From assembly GCA_020536535.1 (NCBI GenBank), contig JAHLWZ010000917.1:1-47866 (forward strand): a stretch of DNA of 47,866 nucleotides, in the 5' to 3' direction. Both the position numbers and the translations under genes were made by a program. Of this stretch, positions 17,697 to 36,380 are shown one piece after another (position 1 is the first letter of the stretch; the number at the start of each line of letters is the position of its first letter). Under the pieces are notes generated by a model. That model did no database searches. It was not told the origin of the DNA and saw nothing but the letters and a program-made list of their open reading frames with translations. The DNA comes from Pelomyxa schiedti (taxonomy: Eukaryota > Protista > Evosea).

Positions 17697-19298
17697 ATGA
17701 TCCGAGACAATTCACGTGGTCAGACGCACCAAGTCGACTGCCACTTTTCTTCCAGCAGCGTTACGAGCCACAACAACGGCGGCCCCGAGGCAAATCACGG
17801 GCCAGATCTATCGCCCATCATCGCGGAGGCTGAATCAGGCAACATCGGCGCGATGAAGAAAATGGGCACATATTTGCACAAGGGATGGGGCGTCGCCGTC
17901 GATCACGCAAGGGCGTTCAAATACTTCAAGATGGCCGCCGATCTGGGCGACGTTGACTCCCTCAACACTCTCGGCGAGATGTATCGCGATGGAGAAGGCG
18001 TCGGGAAGAATCCCGCTGCTGCTTTCAGGTGCTTTGAGAGTGCTGCTGCTCGCGATCATGTTGGCGCCACGTACAATCTCGCATGGTGCTATGTCGAGGG
18101 CGTGGGAGTTGCAGAAGACACAGCGAGAGCTGTTCCTCTTCTTGAAAAGGCTGCTGCTGCTGGGAAGCTCGACGCAATCCAGACACTTGGTCGCTGCTAT
18201 CTTCTGGGAAGCGGTGTTGCCAAAGACTTGCCGAAGGCGTTTGAATTGTTTCAGAAGGCTGTCAGCAACGGGAGGGCTCTGTCAAAGTTCGACCTCGCCA
18301 AGTTTTACCGGGATGGAATACTTGTGCCCCAGGACACGGCGAAGGCACTCAGTCTGCTTCGGGAGGCTGCGGATGCAGGAAGCATCGAGGCAGTGGCCGA
18401 CTTGGGCCAGCATTATCTGTTAGGGGATGGTGTCGTGAAGGATGTCAGAAAAGCAGCCGAGCTACTCCAGCAAGCAGCGGTCGCAGGAGAGCCATCCGCG
18501 CAGTTCCTACTGTTTACAATGCATAAGTGTGGAGAGGGAGTTCCTCGTGATTGGAAAAAGGCAGGGTCTCTTCTTACCCTTTCCGCAAGTGGAGGGTATC
18601 CACCAGCAATGCGTGAACTGGGCCAACACTTCCTCAGGGGTCAAGGAGTTCCAAAAGATCCGGCTAAAGGCGTTGAACTGCTTCAAAAAGCTGCAAGTGC
18701 AGGGGATTTGGAGGCAAAGACCATCCTGGCTCAGTTGAATCACCAAGATGTGGCTGCCGATTCCAGCACACTGAACTTTATTACCGAGCAGAAGAAAGCA
18801 GCAGAGAGAGGCACACCCAGTTCCTTGAGGAGCATTGGGCTCATGACGCTATATGGGAAATGGGTAGACAAAGACCCCGAACTTGCCGTTTCATATCTCC
18901 AGAGAGCCGCTGCAGCGGGAGATCCCAGCGCGGTAGCTCATCTTGCAGTATGCTACGAATACGGAGAAGGTGTTTCCAAGGACTTGGCCAAAGCAGAAGA
19001 ACTTTACCAACAGCTCGGCGAAACTGAAAGAGGCGCTGCGCTACTGAGTATAGCGAAGACATATGAATGCGGAGACCCGGCGTTCAACATTGAAAAGGAC
19101 CCAGTGAAAGCCATTGCAATTTACCGCAGAGCAGCGTCACTCGGGGTAGCGACTGCACGGGCCAGGCTACAGTACATCTCAGTCGATGCCGATGAATTCT
19201 GGGAGCACATTCTCCCCGTTATACTGCCCTCCTTGTTCCCCATGCTACGTGGCAGAGGTTTCCCGTACGACGAAACGAAGCCCTTTTCTCTCTACTAA
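17697..19298 (+). CDS. Sel1-like repeat (SLR) protein, intronless, paralog A
   Basis: 533-aa ORF with about 11-12 repeats of the type A..LG..Y..G.GV.KD...A...F..AA..G. Confidence 0.93.
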   Translation: MIRDNSRGQTHQVDCHFSSSSVTSHNNGGPEANHGPDLSPIIAEAESGNIGAMKKMGTYLHKGWGVAVDHARAFKYFKMAADLGDVDSLNTLGEMYRDGEGVGKNPAAAFRCFESAAARDHVGATYNLAWCYVEGVGVAEDTARAVPLLEKAAAAGKLDAIQTLGRCYLLGSGVAKDLPKAFELFQKAVSNGRALSKFDLAKFYRDGILVPQDTAKALSLLREAADAGSIEAVADLGQHYLLGDGVVKDVRKAAELLQQAAVAGEPSAQFLLFTMHKCGEGVPRDWKKAGSLLTLSASGGYPPAMRELGQHFLRGQGVPKDPAKGVELLQKAASAGDLEAKTILAQLNHQDVAADSSTLNFITEQKKAAERGTPSSLRSIGLMTLYGKWVDKDPELAVSYLQRAAAAGDPSAVAHLAVCYEYGEGVSKDLAKAEELYQQLGETERGAALLSIAKTYECGDPAFNIEKDPVKAIAIYRRAASLGVATARARLQYISVDADEFWEHILPVILPSLFPMLRGRGFPYDETKPFSLY

Positions 19299-19554: not shown

Positions 19555-21132
19555 ATGAGACGAAGCAACAAAACAGACAGTGTTGACTTTCACTTCGCTT
19601 CAAGCAACGTAACAAGCAACAACGAGGCAAATCACGGGCCAGATCTATCGCCCATCATCGCGGAGGCTGAATCAGGCAACATCGGCGCGATGAAGAAAAT
19701 GGGCACATATTTGCACAAGGGATGGGGCGTCGCCGTCGATCACGCAAGGGCGTTCAAATACTTCAAGATGGCCGCCGATCTGGGCGACGTTGACTCCCTC
19801 AACACTCTCGGCGAGATGTATCGCGATGGAGAAGGCGTCGGGAAGAATCCCGCTGCTGCTTTCAGGTGCTTTGAGAGTGCTGCTGCTCGCGATCATGTTG
19901 GCGCCACGTGCAATCTCGCATGGTGTTACACTGATGGTGTTGGAGTTGCAGAAGATACAGCGAGAGCTGTTCCTCTTCTTGAAAAGGCTGCTGCTGCTGG
20001 GAAGCTCGACGCAATCCAGACACTTGGTCGCTGCTATCTTGTGGGGAAGGGTGTTGCCAAAGACTTGCCAAAGGCGTTCGAATTGTTTCAGAAGGCTGTC
20101 AGCAACGGGAGGGCTCTGTCAAAGTTCGACCTCGCCAAGTTTTACCGGGATGGAATACTTGTGCCCCAGGACTCGGCCATGGCAGTCAATTTGTATAGGG
20201 AGGCAGCTAACGCCGGAAGCACCGCGGCAGTGTACTGCTTGGGCGTCTGTTTAATGATGGGGGATGGTGTGAAGAAAGATGTCACAAAAGCAGCCGCGCT
20301 GTTCCAAGCAGCAGCAAATTCAGGAGATGAGAATTCGATGTTCATCCTCTCTGTACTGTATGAAGTTGGGGAAGGTGTTCCGCGGGATGCAAAGAAAGCA
20401 CTGTCACTTCTGATCTGTTCTGCAAATGGAGGGTGTCCAACGGCTATGAGTAAACTGGGAACAATGTACTTCTATGGTGACAGTAGAGTGCCAAAAAACC
20501 CCCAAAAAGGCCTTGGGCTGCTTCAGCAAGCTGCAAATGCAGGAGATTTGCAGGCAAAGACTTTCCTTGCTGCAATAAATCACCAAGATATGCCTGGCTG
20601 TTCCCTGAGGAACCTTGATATTCAAAGCGATGAAGGTGATGAAGTGAATACAATTACCGAGCTCAAGAAGTTAGCAGAGAGGGGTGCACCTATGGCACAG
20701 GAGGTACTTGGGATAATGGCGAAATATGGGAGATGCGTTGAGAAAGACCCTGAGCTTGCCTTCTTATATTTCCAGAGAGCCGACGCAGCAGGAGAAGCCG
20801 CGGCAACAGCCCAGCTTGCGTTGTGCTATGAATACGGCGAAGGTGTTACCAAGGATTTGGCCAAAGCAGAGGCTTTGTACAGAAAGCTTCTAGACACTGG
20901 AAAAGCCTCGGAGCTCATACCCATTGCCCGAGCATATGAGACGGGGGAGCGAGAGCCGCCCATCATTGAAAAGGATAAAGCCAAGGCCACTGCCATTTAC
21001 CGCAGAGCAGCATCACTCGGGGTCACGATTGCACAAGTCAGGCTGCAGTACCTCTCAGTCGACGCCGATGTCTTCTGGGAGACTATTGTTCCCACCATCG
21101 AGGCTTTGCTTCCTAAGACAGTTGGTTATTGA
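19555..21132 (+). CDS. Sel1-like repeat (SLR) protein, intronless, paralog B
   Basis: 525-aa ORF colinear with paralog A, with the same repeat consensus. Confidence 0.93.
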   Translation: MRRSNKTDSVDFHFASSNVTSNNEANHGPDLSPIIAEAESGNIGAMKKMGTYLHKGWGVAVDHARAFKYFKMAADLGDVDSLNTLGEMYRDGEGVGKNPAAAFRCFESAAARDHVGATCNLAWCYTDGVGVAEDTARAVPLLEKAAAAGKLDAIQTLGRCYLVGKGVAKDLPKAFELFQKAVSNGRALSKFDLAKFYRDGILVPQDSAMAVNLYREAANAGSTAAVYCLGVCLMMGDGVKKDVTKAAALFQAAANSGDENSMFILSVLYEVGEGVPRDAKKALSLLICSANGGCPTAMSKLGTMYFYGDSRVPKNPQKGLGLLQQAANAGDLQAKTFLAAINHQDMPGCSLRNLDIQSDEGDEVNTITELKKLAERGAPMAQEVLGIMAKYGRCVEKDPELAFLYFQRADAAGEAAATAQLALCYEYGEGVTKDLAKAEALYRKLLDTGKASELIPIARAYETGEREPPIIEKDKAKATAIYRRAASLGVTIAQVRLQYLSVDADVFWETIVPTIEALLPKTVGY

Positions 21133-21418
21133 CGTGTTCCCTACCACGAAGCTCAATGTCCACCACACTAACTAATCTATAAGGGAGAATAAAAATANNN
21201 NNNNNNNNNNNNNNNNNNNNNNNNNNNNNNNNNNNNNNNNNNNNNNNNNNNNNNNNNNNNNNNNNNNNNNNNNNNNNNNNNNNNNNNNNNNNNNNNNGGG
21301 AGACTATTGTTCCCACCATCGAGGCTTTGCTTCCTAAGACAGTTGGTTATTGACGTGTTCCCTACCACGAAGCTCAATGTCCACCACACTAACTAATCTA
21401 TAAGGGAGAATAAAAATA
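21077..21418. other. 100-N gap (21198-21297) flanked by an exact 121-bp direct duplication
   Basis: 21077-21197 is identical to 21298-21418. Confidence 0.92.
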
Positions 21419-23140: not shown

Positions 23141-24849
23141 ATGTGCAAGTGGTGCCGAATATTCCGTCAGTACGAGGGCAAGGTGCCAAAGAGGCACATA
23201 GTGAACGTGGTGTGCTGCGACGACGCCAAGTTCGACCGCGCCACGTCGCTGCTGTGCCGCGAGCTGGCCTACCGCGCCTCCGCCCCCAAGCCCATAGTGC
23301 CGTCGCGCCCCCTCCTCCCTCCCAGGGAGCGCACCCCTCCCCCTCGCCCTGTTGATGGTGATGACGAGGACGAGGACGCCGAGGAGGAGGACGACGACGA
23401 CGAGGACGCCGAGGAGGAGGACGACGACGACGACGACGACGATGACGATGATGATGACGATGACGACGACGAGGAGGAGGAGGCGGCGCGGGCCGAGGCG
23501 GTGGCGGAGATGGAGGCGGCGCACGTGGACGCGGGGATGATGATGATGGAGGCGGCGCAGAGGCTGAGGCCGCTGGACCACGTGGTGGCGCTGGCCTGGT
23601 CGTCGTTCTACTGGCGCCGCGGGCTGCGAGACGAGGCCGTGGCCTACGCTAGGAAGGCGGTATGCGAAAGCTTCCTGGGTTGTATGGCAATGTATATCTA
23701 CTACANNNNNNNNNNNNNNNNNNNNNNNNNNNNNNNNNNNNNNNNNNNNNNNNNNNNNNNNNNNNNNNNNNNNNNNNNNNNNNNNNNNNNNNNNNNNNNN
23801 NNNNNCTAAATGCAATCGAGGGTTTGTACTTCAGCATTCATATTTCGCAGATAGTAACACAACCCAACAGAAATCGCTTTTTATCAAACTCCTTTTACTG
23901 TGGCAGATATGAGGCGTGTATGTAGAGGTAGTACGCTCTCTCAGCATTTTCCTAGCTACTCATTGACACAGACTGGTACTATGCACTCTCCACACGTGAT
24001 TTCAAGCGGGACTATCTCATTCAACAGCACATGTTCAAGCCAGATGTTACTGATCCAACAATTGACTGGCCACATGAATTTGATACCTTCAATTCATCAT
24101 TCCTTCAGCTTCGTTCGCTGCTCCGATTTGAAAGAACAGAAAAAGTATTAAAAACAGGCTTCTTAGTTCCAATCTTCCATACACCCCTGTGTACCCTTGA
24201 TGGTAATCCACATTACGTTATTAGGCATGCCACATAGTGACCTGACCCTCACAGATATTTGCACCTTTGAGGAAAAGAATCACGTTTCAATGCCTAATGC
24301 GATGCGCTATCACATCTTAATTCAAAATGGAATTCAAATGGAGCTAAAGGATGTGACCTTTGTACTGCTTCGGCTGGAGGACTTCACTCCTTACAAACTG
24401 TTCAATGTGTGCTTTGGTCCATTTCGGGCGAAAAACTTTTTATTAGCTTACAAATTCAAAAATAGATTTCGTTCCAAAGCAATATCAAACAGCAGAAAGT
24501 CTGTAGCACCCCTGAGCACAAGTTTTACGTGGGCAGAGTGTACAGAGGATTGGATTGGTCAGAGGAGATAATTCTTGTTGTAAACTTGGATCCTACAGAT
24601 CCTGCTTTGTACGGGCAAATTATATGCCTTTTACCTGTAAGTGTCAGTAATTACCCTTTGGCCAGCCCTCTCACTTGGTTCTCAAACCAGGGAAACACCG
24701 TTTGCGGTGTTTACAAAGATTATGCCGAGTTGATTTCCAGTATGCTCCGTCTTTACTATTCTTATTTTGTTGGATTCTTTGAAGAGACAGAACAAAGGTT
24801 TCTTTCCTCTTTTTCAGAGGTTTTTTTTACATTGACTTCCTGCAAATAA
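23141..24849 (+). CDS. Putative F-box + SMI1/KNR4-domain protein with poly-Asp/Glu tract (spans the N gap at 23706-23805)
   Basis: Acidic tract 23355-23480; F-box-like end ADMRRVCR|DWYYALS; SMI1/KNR4-like ICTFEEKNHVSMPNAMRYHILIQNG...ILVVNLDPTDPALYGQII...VYKDYAELI. Confidence 0.6.
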
Positions 24850-31756: not shown

Positions 31757-33866
31757 ATGGGCAGGAGGGGGACGCAGAGGGCGAGGCGGAGGAGGCCGAC
31801 GCCACAGGGGCGAATGGAGAAGAGACCACAGCGGAGAGTGCTGGTGCTGGGGATGGGGCAGGGGCAGGGGCAGGGGCCGAGAGCGCCGGGGTGGGTGGTG
31901 TTGCTGATGTCGGTGGGGGGGCGGAGGCTGCTGCTGTTCCCGTGGTTGTGGGGCCAAGGACACCAGAGGGGTGTAAGTCGTTGGCTCAGTTGGTCGCTGA
32001 TGGTGACACTAAAGGATTGAAGAACGCTATAGAGGTAGAGGGCAGGCCTGCTGATGAAATGGACGTGGAGGGTGATACTGCTTTGCACATCGCCTCTTTC
32101 AAGGGCCTCATCAAGTATGTTCCCTTTTTTTTTTTTTACCCATAATTGTATTCTTTTTCTTTATTTGTGATGTTTAACCTATAGTGTGTTGCGGTACTTG
32201 CTGGATAAAGGAGGTAATCCCAACTGCAAGAACGGCTTGGGGTCTACGCCACTTCATCGTTTGGCTGTTAGCCCATTGCAAGATATACCAATGGCGACCT
32301 CACGAGTAGCAGACTTACTGTCACTGCTATTGTCAAAAGGTTTGTTTTTTTTTTTTTTCCCTCACAACTTAAACCTGTGTTAGGGGCAAACCCACTTGCT
32401 GTTAATAAATCTGGTGTTGTTCCACTTGACATAATGCCCCCAAAAGTTCGTTATCTTATGGAACCTTATATTCCTAAGATGGAAATGCAAGTGGGCCAAC
32501 AGTATGTGGCACTTGTAATTGGTATAACCCTACAACGATATTGTCATTAACAACGTACAAAGGGAGTGCTGGTAGTGTAATGCACTCGATTGAGGCCCAA
32601 TGTGGTGTGAGGCTTGTAGTTGGTGAATCCATCAATCACAACTGCACTATTACGATAATGGGCCCTGATGATGCCAGGAACAAAGCAAGACTGAGCATTC
32701 TCGAAATTGTTGATGTAAGCACCTAATCTGCTTTCACTGTTGTCCTTATTTTTGGAAGGCGTGCAAAAGAAGAGAAAAGCAAGTTGAGGACTGTCGTCGA
32801 ATGATTGCTGAAAAGGAAAGAAAAGAGAGGCTCCTCAGGGAGCAAGAACAACAGGAACGGGCAAGAAAAGAGAAAGAGCGCAAGGCTAAACAAGATATAG
32901 AAGTAACCCTCCCGGTGCCAACATCGAAACGTGAGGTACGAATTTCCGTCTCGTACTGATACTGAAAACACCTAGTATCTTGCTAGTTATCAGCTCACAC
33001 TGAGAGATAAATACAATATGGATTTGAATTTCGTCGAAGGTAAAGCAATGAATATGGTCTCCAAACTCACCTCAATGACAGACGAAACTGGACTGCAAGT
33101 TGTAGCCAAGGGAATGAGCACCAATTTTGGCAAAGCAGTAGAAGAAGTGAAGTCAATTATATCCTCAAAAAAGTTGGTGCCCCCGCCACCCACCATAGTC
33201 ACAACCACTGTGGAGTCAAAGGTGACAAACACCAAAATAACAATTCAAGTGACAAAGAATGCACCCGCAATCCCAGCCACAACTGCCGCACCAAAGGACA
33301 AAAAGAAGAAACAGCCCTCTTCAAAAACTCCGCAACTTTCCACATCCCCTCCTCCACAAAAAGCAGCTTCACCAACCCCAAGTAAGTCCCCTGCCTCACA
33401 GCCCACTACACGATACCCTCCACAGCAAACAGGCCCAGTGAAAACCGCACAAATTCACTTGCCAGCCTTTATTCAGACTCTCCCCACGACGTCAACAACA
33501 ACCGCTTCGTCGTCCTCACAATCACCAGCCCAAAAGAAAACAGCTCCTCCTCAGCAACAGCAACAGCAGCATCATCAACAACAACAACAGTCCGCCCCCT
33601 GGGTTTTCTGGTCTCCTTTTGTCAACTCTCAATATTTTTGGGAGGTGCCGACGCAAAAGAACGTCATCTCGGATCTTGGTATGTGGGCTGTATGCTTTTT
33701 TCCGTTATTTACCATTCGCAGCCTGACCTTGGTGTTACGTCGCCAAAGTGCGACTGGATGCAGCCATTGCAAAAGCAAAAGCGCTGCACCCTACAGCATC
33801 CATTAGGGTACTTCTCCTTTTTAATTGAAAATGTTACTATGCACCATTTAGGCGGTGGCTTCCTGA
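31468..33866 (+). CDS. Ankyrin-repeat + KH-domain protein with acidic N-terminus, coiled coil, P/Q-rich region and terminal FrnE-like UxxC segment (ends 33726 if TGA is a stop, 33866 if recoded)
   Basis: Ankyrin repeats GDTALHIASFKG...GSTPLHRL...GANPLAVNKSG; KH domain VALVIG|SAGSVMHSIEAQCGV...ITIMGPDDARNKARLSI. Hand-splicing is continuous through KERKERLLREQEQ into ORF 33018 and on to NVISDLA-TGA. Confidence 0.75.
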
Positions 33867-33980
33867 GAAAAGGAAACCCCCACCAAGTCTTTCCCTCGTC
33901 TTTTTTCTCTTTCTCACTCCTTCGCGGGGGCGAGAGTTGTGAACCGAGGCCGCGGTGGCTTCCTGATCCAAGGAAACCCC
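33852..33980. repeat. Two copies of a 29-bp hairpin-forming motif GCGGTGGCTTCCTGA-nnn-AAGGAAACCCC, 100 bp apart
   Basis: 33852-33880 and 33952-33980 are 26/29 identical and differ only in the loop. Confidence 0.85.
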
Positions 33981-34452
33981 GCCTCCTTTCATGCTTTTAA
34001 AAAAAAAAAGAAATTGGTGAAAGTCTACCTTTGTTTGGCGATAAATAAAAGAATGGAGAGGTTATGCTGCGTCTTCTTTTTTGTGTATGGTATCGTGCGC
34101 TCATTGTGGGTCCGGGTAAAAAGGTCCAGACTCTTTGTCCCTGAGGCATCCCACAAAGATACAAAGGTACAGTGCACTTCAGGTTTTTTCTCTGTTGCGG
34201 TGCTGTGATTGGGTGGTTGTAAAAAGGTTGGTGTTGTCGTTTCAACAAGAGAAAACAAGGGACTCCAAGGGCACAGGGGAAAAAAACCAGTGTACCCTAC
34301 CACCCAAAGAATCAAGAAAAAACCTTGTTGAAAAGTAAGAAAATTTTAAGTTTTTCCTTTGAGGGTGGTGTTTTGTTGTCCACTGGATTCCTTGATATTA
34401 CATTTCCTTGTGCATAACACGGTTGCTGTACATATATATGTTCACACCAGCT

Positions 34453-36380
34453 TTACATCAGTTTTGTGGCTTTGTCTTGCTGGAACTTCTTCCAAGTAAA
34501 CACGCCAAAGAGAACTGCAACCTGCAGTGCCATGATTGTCAGCCATGGGCCAAAGGATGTGGAGTTGAAAAATTTGTTGACTGTAGTATCAGCAGTGGAA
34601 CTTATTTGGTTGTGCAAGCTTTCAGTTGCTGAAGAGAGATGCTACAAAATACATCTTAGATGAGCAACAACTAAGAGTATATACATGTGCTGCTGACTGT
34701 ATGTGCGTGAGAGTGGCGTCCTGTGCATGAAGTTTGTCAGTAATCATTGATGTAGTCTTCTCGACTTCTGCCACATGTTTCCTACAAAGGAAAAAAGGTA
34801 TGATAAAAATCAATTGGACGGTGGTACATACATCAGTGAGTCAATGGCTTGCTGGTGAGGCACTGCCGATGTGGATAACCGCTTGGATAGAGCGACGAGC
34901 GAATTACTCAACGTGCTCTTTGGTAGAGAAGCTGCATTTAAATTTTGTTGCCCAGCGACAAGGGAGCTCATGAGGGTATCGATGTGCTTCAGGTGTTTAA
35001 GGATAAAAACCTGAGGGATTAATATACTTCCGAACCTCAAATTGAAGGGAAAAAGTTGTTGTAAGCATCTCAAGAGCAAGTTGCTCAGGAATATCTTTGG
35101 GTGCACCTTAAAGAAAATCAGGCTAAAAAAAAATACTGTGCCCATGGTACTTGGAAACGTGGGAACGGGTTCAGTAAGAGATAACTTAGCTCTATCCACA
35201 AGCTCCTTTGGTGCTTGTTAGTACTGATCACTATTGTGTACTGCAAGGAACCCTGAAAGAAAGCTTAGATGCTCCAGATACTTCTGCGGCCTTGATGGAT
35301 ACAACCTCTGGTTGACTAGGTGGTTGGGGTTCAACTGCCCTCTATAAGTGTGAAAAAAAAAAAGGAAGGAAATAGTGAAAGTACTTTTCTTGGTGACAAG
35401 TCCCGCATTTGAAAGGAGTACACATCATGGTTATCTGGTTGTTCATGTGGAAGTACTAAAGTAAAATTGCACAAGCACACCAGCAAGAGCCCCTGTAGTA
35501 GCACTAAGTCCAAAGTAGTAACCAGTGGGGAGTTTAATCTCATGAAGCTCCACACATTGTGTCCACCGATCATCATGTGAGGTGTCCATCCAGACCTAAC
35601 ACGAGTTACGCACAACCGTTTCAATCAAATTAGGTACAGATAATGTTTGTTGTTCCCCTTCATAGCGGATCCTGGCTTTTGGGTTCTTTGCTGTATTTCG
35701 GAAGAAACTTTGGCAACCACCAGTCTGAATATCCTGGCCATCTGTAGCTGGATTGTAAACTTTGCTTTCATCATTCATAATAATGCTGACATATGGATTG
35801 TTCCTCTTTTCAAATGTTACAGGAGAAGCAATTCTACCTAATTACCTTTCCATCGTTATCATAAGTGTCAAAGGAAATCATGAGCCCGGACCAGGTTTCC
35901 TTTGAACCAAAGGCAGGACCCTGAGTTGAGGGAGTTTCTGCGTACCAAAATGCGAATCCGTCGGCGCCGACTCGGCCGCCTCCATGTATCTTGTATTCGA
36001 GGGTTACCTCCCAGTCAATAGCTTCAACTTTCTAGAGGTGCAGTCAATGAAAAAGTCACTACAACATAGGAGTATGTATCAATACCGCAACGTTCCAAAT
36101 GTTTCCCGTTCGAGACGGCGTTGAAGGAGTCAACCGGATGTAATCGTCAGAAACCACAGTAGAACCCCCAAAGTTCCAGAATCGAATAGAACCGTGTCCT
36201 AGGGAGCAGTAAATAACCCCACGTCCCGTAAGTAAAGAGCGTGTTACCTTTCAGAAAGGGCTTTGCAAAAGAGTGCAAACGCACAACCGGCGTATCACGT
36301 TCTTCGGCTACAGTTTGTACGACACATAGGTCAACGCACACGAGAACAACGAGCGCTATAAAAACAACGCCACGCCGCAT
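34453..36380 (-). CDS. LMAN1: ERGIC-53/VIP36-like L-type lectin cargo receptor (multi-exon)
   Basis: Signal peptide; HSFAKPF, YIRLTPS, GADGFAFWY, GLMISFDTYDND; helical stalk; TM WLTIMALQVAVLFGVFTW and short tail KKFQQDKATKLM; TAA 34453-34455. Confidence 0.88.

Follow-up and report, generated by a model that had tools for sequence, protein, structure and literature searches.

Does the in-frame TGA at the end of this ankyrin-KH gene encode selenocysteine (Sec), as its place in a FrnE/DsbA-like active-site motif would suggest, or did it arrive with a fragment of another gene? We examined it in the context of the whole 47,866-nt stretch of DNA analysed here (the window). The first-pass annotation had reported the peptide NVISDL, a 43-nt intron and then A-TGA-PWCYVAKVRL, with RWLP one frame off behind a further intron-like segment, and had offered two readings: a new redox-tipped RNA-binding selenoprotein, or a fragment captured from the gene of a FrnE selenoprotein. 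All of these elements were found where they had been placed. On the plus strand, 33660–33678 reads NVISDL, 33679–33721 is a 43-nt segment of the form GTATGT..CGCAG, and 33722–33807 behind it reads (A)-TGA-PWCYVAKVRLDAAIAKAKALHPTASIR, with the TGA at 33724–33726. The second segment, 33808–33851, starts with GT and ends with AG. On its 3′ side the in-frame reading is AVAS-stop, and RWLP does stand one frame off. The long last-exon open reading frame (ORF), which runs from 33018, is in frame with 33660.

The motif is that of a UxxC active site following the first strand (VISDLA-U-PWC-Y), and the in-frame UGA occupies the position at which homologues carry Cys or Sec. The TGA is in the frame of the host ORF only if 33679–33721 is spliced out and 33382–33425 is not. 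The peptide 3′ of the TGA gave a weak match to the Pfam DSBA profile (PF01323, 191 positions), covering profile positions 11–28 with an E value of 0.14 and 12.4 bits, against a cut-off of 25.6 bits. A complete domain is not present: we counted about 35 residues of a domain of about 190, which agrees with the earlier description of a small remnant, although the figure given there was about 40 aa. A scan of the genome with PF01323 returned no DSBA match at the place of the fragment, and it also missed the related gene on contig C582 described below. We do not take the motif for a chance resemblance, because 33661–33850 matches a real gene at another place in the genome with 97% identity.

That gene was located by a DNA search of the organism's own genome. 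The match lies at G000:C582:30691-30883(-), with 97.4% identity over 194 aligned positions and homology confined to 33661–33850, and the 28-residue peptide is 100% identical at the C582 locus. The C582 gene is complete, with an ATG, six exons, GT..AG introns and a TGA stop, and is the full-length paralogue for which the first-pass annotation had proposed a search. It begins at the ATG with MAANKVVQVDVISDL, and its protein starts MAANKVVQVDVISDLA-U-PWCY. A 46-nt intron 1 is followed by A-TGA-PWCY...ASIR, a 115-nt intron, VKWFPFMIDTG..., three more exons and the TGA stop. Later exons contain NTFHAHRL and GVDGVPFF, which we take to be the usual FrnE/DsbA landmarks. Searches of single exons gave a weak Pfam DSBA match for exon 2 and, in the Atlas search, a thioredoxin-like lead for exon 6. 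The Atlas search with exon 3 returned nothing, Pfam and NCBIfam searches with the exons one at a time returned nothing past the weak exon-2 match, and PDB sequence searches with exons 3 and 6 gave chance matches only. Judged by its motifs, the weak Pfam match, the exon-6 lead and these exon-by-exon searches, the C582 gene looks like a full member of the FrnE/DsbA family.

The copy in the window begins at donor codon 10–11 and lacks the donor start codon and first 10 codons. Its exon pieces and its part of intron 2 are identical to the donor, and every difference falls at one spot in intron 1, where there is a complex indel. blastn of the C582 locus against the window found nothing outside 33661–33850, tblastn with donor exons 3–6 found no match in the whole 47.9-kb window, and the donor 3′ untranslated region (UTR) is likewise missing from the copy. 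High DNA identity, the inclusion of introns, truncation and a lack of flanking homology are together the marks of an unprocessed partial duplicate. Since introns were copied along with exons and homology ends inside intron 2, these features argue for a young partial gene duplicate made at the DNA level, and for neither a retrocopy nor a second gene. With a single mutated spot, the copy is too young for decay or selection to show. We conclude that 33661–33850 probably arose at the DNA level as a partial, non-functional copy of the C582 FrnE/DsbA-like UxxC gene, restricted to its 5′ portion and set in a patchwork behind a truncated copy of the ankyrin-KH gene (Table 1). This bears out the second reading offered by the first-pass annotation, that of a piece captured from a FrnE selenoprotein gene, with its donor on C582, its introns copied and its end inside intron 2.

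Table 1. Features at and around the TGA at 33724–33726, in window positions unless another contig is named.
Feature	Position	Strand	Basis or remark
Ankyrin-KH gene copy, annotated protein P0001	31468..33600	+	Mapping of P0001; 31780-33600 duplicated on C505
Ankyrin-KH last exon in the first-pass frame, S/T/P/Q-rich tail	32976..33678	+	ORF from 33018 in frame
Unique filler, 60 nt, reads (W)VFWSPFVNSQYFWEVPTQK	33601..33660	+	Between the end of ankyrin-KH homology and the FrnE piece
Captured FrnE/DsbA-like fragment	33661..33850	+	97% identity to C582
Fragment: tail of exon 1	33661-33678	+	
Fragment: intron 1	33679-33721	+	
Fragment: exon 2	33722-33807	+	
Fragment: first 43 nt of intron 2	33808-33850	+	
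TGA copied from the donor Sec codon (U-P-W-C)	33724..33726	+	Alignment to C582
29-nt direct repeats	33852-33880, 33952-33980	+	First starts right after the fragment
Decayed transposon piece (family positions ~25-241)	34104..34338	+	70% identity to four near-identical copies elsewhere
Full transposon copy	L015 1428-2105 = G000:C718:14380-15057		15-nt inverted ends and TAA flanks

We then asked what kind of gene the fragment has joined. The protein search had a single match, P0001. This protein of 656 aa combines ankyrin repeats and a KH domain with a long tail rich in S, T, P and Q; a KH_1 Pfam match falls on the exon at 32541–32726. The public model of P0001 splices three introns in this region, namely one of 42 nt, a frame-shifting one of 44 nt (33382–33425) and the 43-nt intron copied from the donor. 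In this model the FrnE exon is translated in the +1 frame (CLTLVLRRQSATGCSH...) up to a TAG stop at 33804–33806, and the TGA at 33724–33726 is therefore not a codon in the public model. A second copy of the gene, C505:1299-3086(-), stands at the end of a 235-kb contig and is 95% identical over 31780–33600 and 100% identical over 32788–33600, with no synteny beyond. Its last exon forms a single, unbroken ORF of 360 codons in the frame of the first-pass annotation. By sequence comparison, this ORF supports that frame over the annotated 44-nt intron at 33382–33425, and since it runs through both 33049–33090 and 33382–33425, these two introns of the P0001 model are probably spurious. The 44-nt segment is C-rich (GC 0.59), and codon-usage log-odds did not discriminate between the two frames of 33426–33678 (0.19 versus 0.16). 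A word search with the last exon returned no match.

The C505 and window copies diverge exactly after 33600. Past this point the C505 ORF runs on to a TAG that lies about 160 codons further, with frame and composition unchanged, and the short contig C2453 has the same extension. Because C505 runs on past 33600, we conclude that the window gene is a copy that breaks off at 33600, with patchwork behind it. The ankyrin-KH gene has at least three copies, each differently rearranged: the window copy (31780–33600), that on C505 (G000:C505:799-3086, L024) and that on C2453 (G000:C2453, L021). The C505 copy has a full last exon but carries frame-breaking deletions of 16 nt, 17 nt and 1 nt upstream of it, and the C2453 copy has an internal deletion of about 220 nt together with a 2-nt indel.

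The patchwork consists of short pieces of different origin. Immediately behind the 33600 breakpoint are 60 nt (33601–33660) that have no other copy in the genome, and the FrnE piece starts at their end, 60 nt past the breakpoint. It is followed by 253 unique bases, including the two local 29-nt repeats, and then by a transposon relic. A genome search with the 29-nt repeats matched these two places only, and they are not a dispersed family; each can form a small hairpin. The transposon family is about 678 nt long; its terminal inverted repeats measure 15 nt (CTTTGGGACTCACAC) and are flanked by TAA on either side. It has at least four copies, 88–97% alike, on C718, C806, C4 and C1347. Its sequence features make it look like a non-autonomous transposon of the Tourist/PIF type. 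The inverted repeats are present in the family; the relic in the window, at 70% identity, is without these ends. We considered a transposon enclosing the FrnE fragment and rejected it, as only 34104–34338 matches the family and its end points towards the fragment. Elsewhere in the window there are two 100-N scaffold gaps (21198–21297 and 23706–23805) and an internal duplication of about 1 kb with 86% identity (17786–18756 and 19623–20596).

A Sec codon can be read only where the machinery and an insertion signal exist, and we looked for both. The genome contains tRNA-Sec (67.9 bits, anticodon TCA), SelD (125 bits) and SepSecS, the exons of which cover profile positions 28–388; eEFSec was not separated from other GTPases in the genome search. 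A literature search on Sec use in this amoeba group found no paper. The first-pass annotation, which had suggested searching for such genes, had also taken the locus itself to imply Sec usage in this lineage. Sec usage is indeed supported, through tRNA-Sec, SelD and SepSecS, which are evidence independent of the TGA at 33724–33726; the support does not come from this locus.

Rfam SECIS models gave no match in the window, at the donor locus or in the whole genome. Since they match nowhere in this genome, Rfam is uninformative here, and the absence of a SECIS element rests on a custom pattern scan. Our first two pattern scanners found nothing even behind the donor gene and were replaced by a compact GUGA/AUGA hairpin pattern, tuned to this genome on a hairpin in the donor 3′ UTR and checked on two elements only. 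Besides that tuning case, the compact pattern independently detected a hairpin behind a SelD-like gene on C4. The SelD-associated hairpin (L011, minus strand, ~1052–975, downstream of the SelD-like match at G000:C4 373694–374017) is of the compact GUGA type and folds as a classic SECIS, with helix I, the core, an 8-bp helix II, UAUAAAU and a small top stem. On the plus strand of 33727–35300 the compact pattern had no match, in agreement with the earlier remark that no canonical SECIS is seen downstream, and we found no convincing SECIS in a 3′ UTR belonging to the same transcript as the TGA. A SECIS-like pattern match on the minus strand near 33917, with GUGA..GA around an A/U-rich helix, is probably due to chance, the pattern matching about once per 9 kb. 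A looser scan returned one plus-strand candidate, a hairpin at 34177–34325 with its GUGA at 34205, 480 nt downstream.

Because neither the rest of the gene nor a convincing insertion signal accompanies it, the TGA at 33724–33726 is most likely a plain stop, or is not read as a codon at all. It corresponds to the Sec codon of the donor, cut off from its downstream exons and 3′ UTR. Should the host be transcribed across the piece and the 43-nt intron be removed by splicing, the TGA would end a truncated protein at ...TQKNVISDLA. If the intron is kept, or if the frame of the public model is the true one, translation would stop at the TAG at 33804–33806 and the TGA would never be a codon. A DsbA domain would be made in none of these cases. 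With read-through, at most 27 copied codons and 4–6 more would follow the TGA, and homologous coding sequence does not extend well past it; 27 plus 4–6 codons are far short of a thioredoxin fold.

Three other explanations were weighed against a captured, non-functional fragment. An assembly artefact would mean that the junctions 33600/33601, 33660/33661 and 33850/33851 are absent in the organism, having been created by chimeric whole-genome-amplification products or by wrong path pairing across the 813-nt stretch common to C917 and C505. The history of the assembly invites this suspicion, as it was built with SPAdes from amplified single-cell DNA together with Nanopore reads and then scaffolded (PMC8887013). 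The 813-nt stretch is also identical between the two contigs and reaches exactly up to the breakpoint, and the three junctions fall inside 250 nt. However, the fragment is separated from its donor by the complex indel in intron 1, whereas a chimera of the same sequence would be identical to C582, which speaks against a simple chimera. The products of seven independent amplifications were pooled, and wrong pairing would alter only the upstream exons that precede the shared last exon, not the patchwork behind the copy of that exon. We regard an artefact as unlikely.

The other two explanations accept the junctions and differ over what the fragment does. In one, the truncated ankyrin-KH copy is expressed and its TGA is read as Sec with the help of the transposon-derived hairpin at 34177–34325, giving the protein a short U-P-W-C redox tail. 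The Sec machinery is in the genome, the TGA falls in the best-supported frame once the 43-nt intron is removed, and the hairpin combines its GUGA with a 9-bp helix II, an 11-bp helix I, a 3′ GA and an A-run (AAAAA) that lies 12 nt past the UGA. Its top, however, measures about 82 nt, compared with 18–22 nt in the two compact SECIS-like hairpins of this genome; it lies in the transposon relic, and the four good copies of the transposon read GUGG where the window reads GUGA; and its fold is unremarkable (z −1.2). We therefore took it for a chance look-alike. Only about 35 residues of the domain are present, with no further FrnE exons in the window, the tail would end 4–6 codons after the copy, and the annotated model is in another frame. 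A new redox-tipped RNA-binding selenoprotein, the other reading offered by the first-pass annotation, is thus not supported, and we consider it highly improbable. In the remaining explanation, the fragment would be the initial exons of a FrnE paralogue in its own right, complete and with its other exons further downstream. Genes here consist of many short exons, and exon-wise Pfam scans miss them, as they missed the C582 gene. Yet the donor start codon and first 10 codons are missing, homology stops in the middle of intron 2, and the tblastn search with donor exons 3–6 found nothing in the window, which makes a second complete gene scarcely credible.

The captured, non-functional fragment thus stands as our reading of the locus. 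As a selenoprotein the candidate fails, and it should be kept out of the selenoproteome of this amoeba. The fragment is of use in that it points to a real FrnE/DsbA-like Sec gene on C582; the case for Sec use in this lineage is made by the machinery genes. It also offers a case of a Sec codon parted from its SECIS, which is most likely an ordinary stop and is able to end the host ORF. The ankyrin-KH gene deserves a flag in its own right, as it exists in several rearranged copies and its public model probably contains spurious introns. Were the TGA read as Sec after all, a gene fragment and a repeat would here have given rise to a newborn selenoprotein, an RNA-binding protein with a short U-P-W-C redox tail.

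DsbA/FrnE-like selenoproteins with a UxxC motif are known in bacteria, green algae, Ciona and amphioxus (PMC2874816). The fragment shares with them the N-terminal strand of the family and U-P-W-C, with TGA at the first Cys, and automatic annotation of such genes is prone to lose the Sec exon. Unlike them, the fragment is limited to about 35 residues of the domain and lacks a start codon, downstream exons and its own SECIS; it is part of a selenoprotein gene of this kind, not itself a family member. The hairpin at 34177–34325 resembles a eukaryotic SECIS in its GUGA..GA core, in the length of its helix II, in having a helix I and in the usual spacing of its A-run, but differs in its oversized top, in belonging to a repeat family the other copies of which are without the UGA, and in having no Rfam match. 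The fragment is also like unprocessed partial duplicates, such as pseudogene fragments and templated filler DNA at rearrangement breakpoints, in which introns are copied with exons, both ends are truncated and flanking homology is lacking; as in those, the fragment is one element of a mosaic that also includes a second truncated gene copy and the relic of a transposon. It departs from the usual partial duplicate in that the stop-like codon it took over stood for Sec in the donor, and in that the piece happens to lie in the frame of the host ORF and may supply its stop. What we have found is most likely an ordinary gene fragment, the small curiosity being a Sec codon demoted to a stop.
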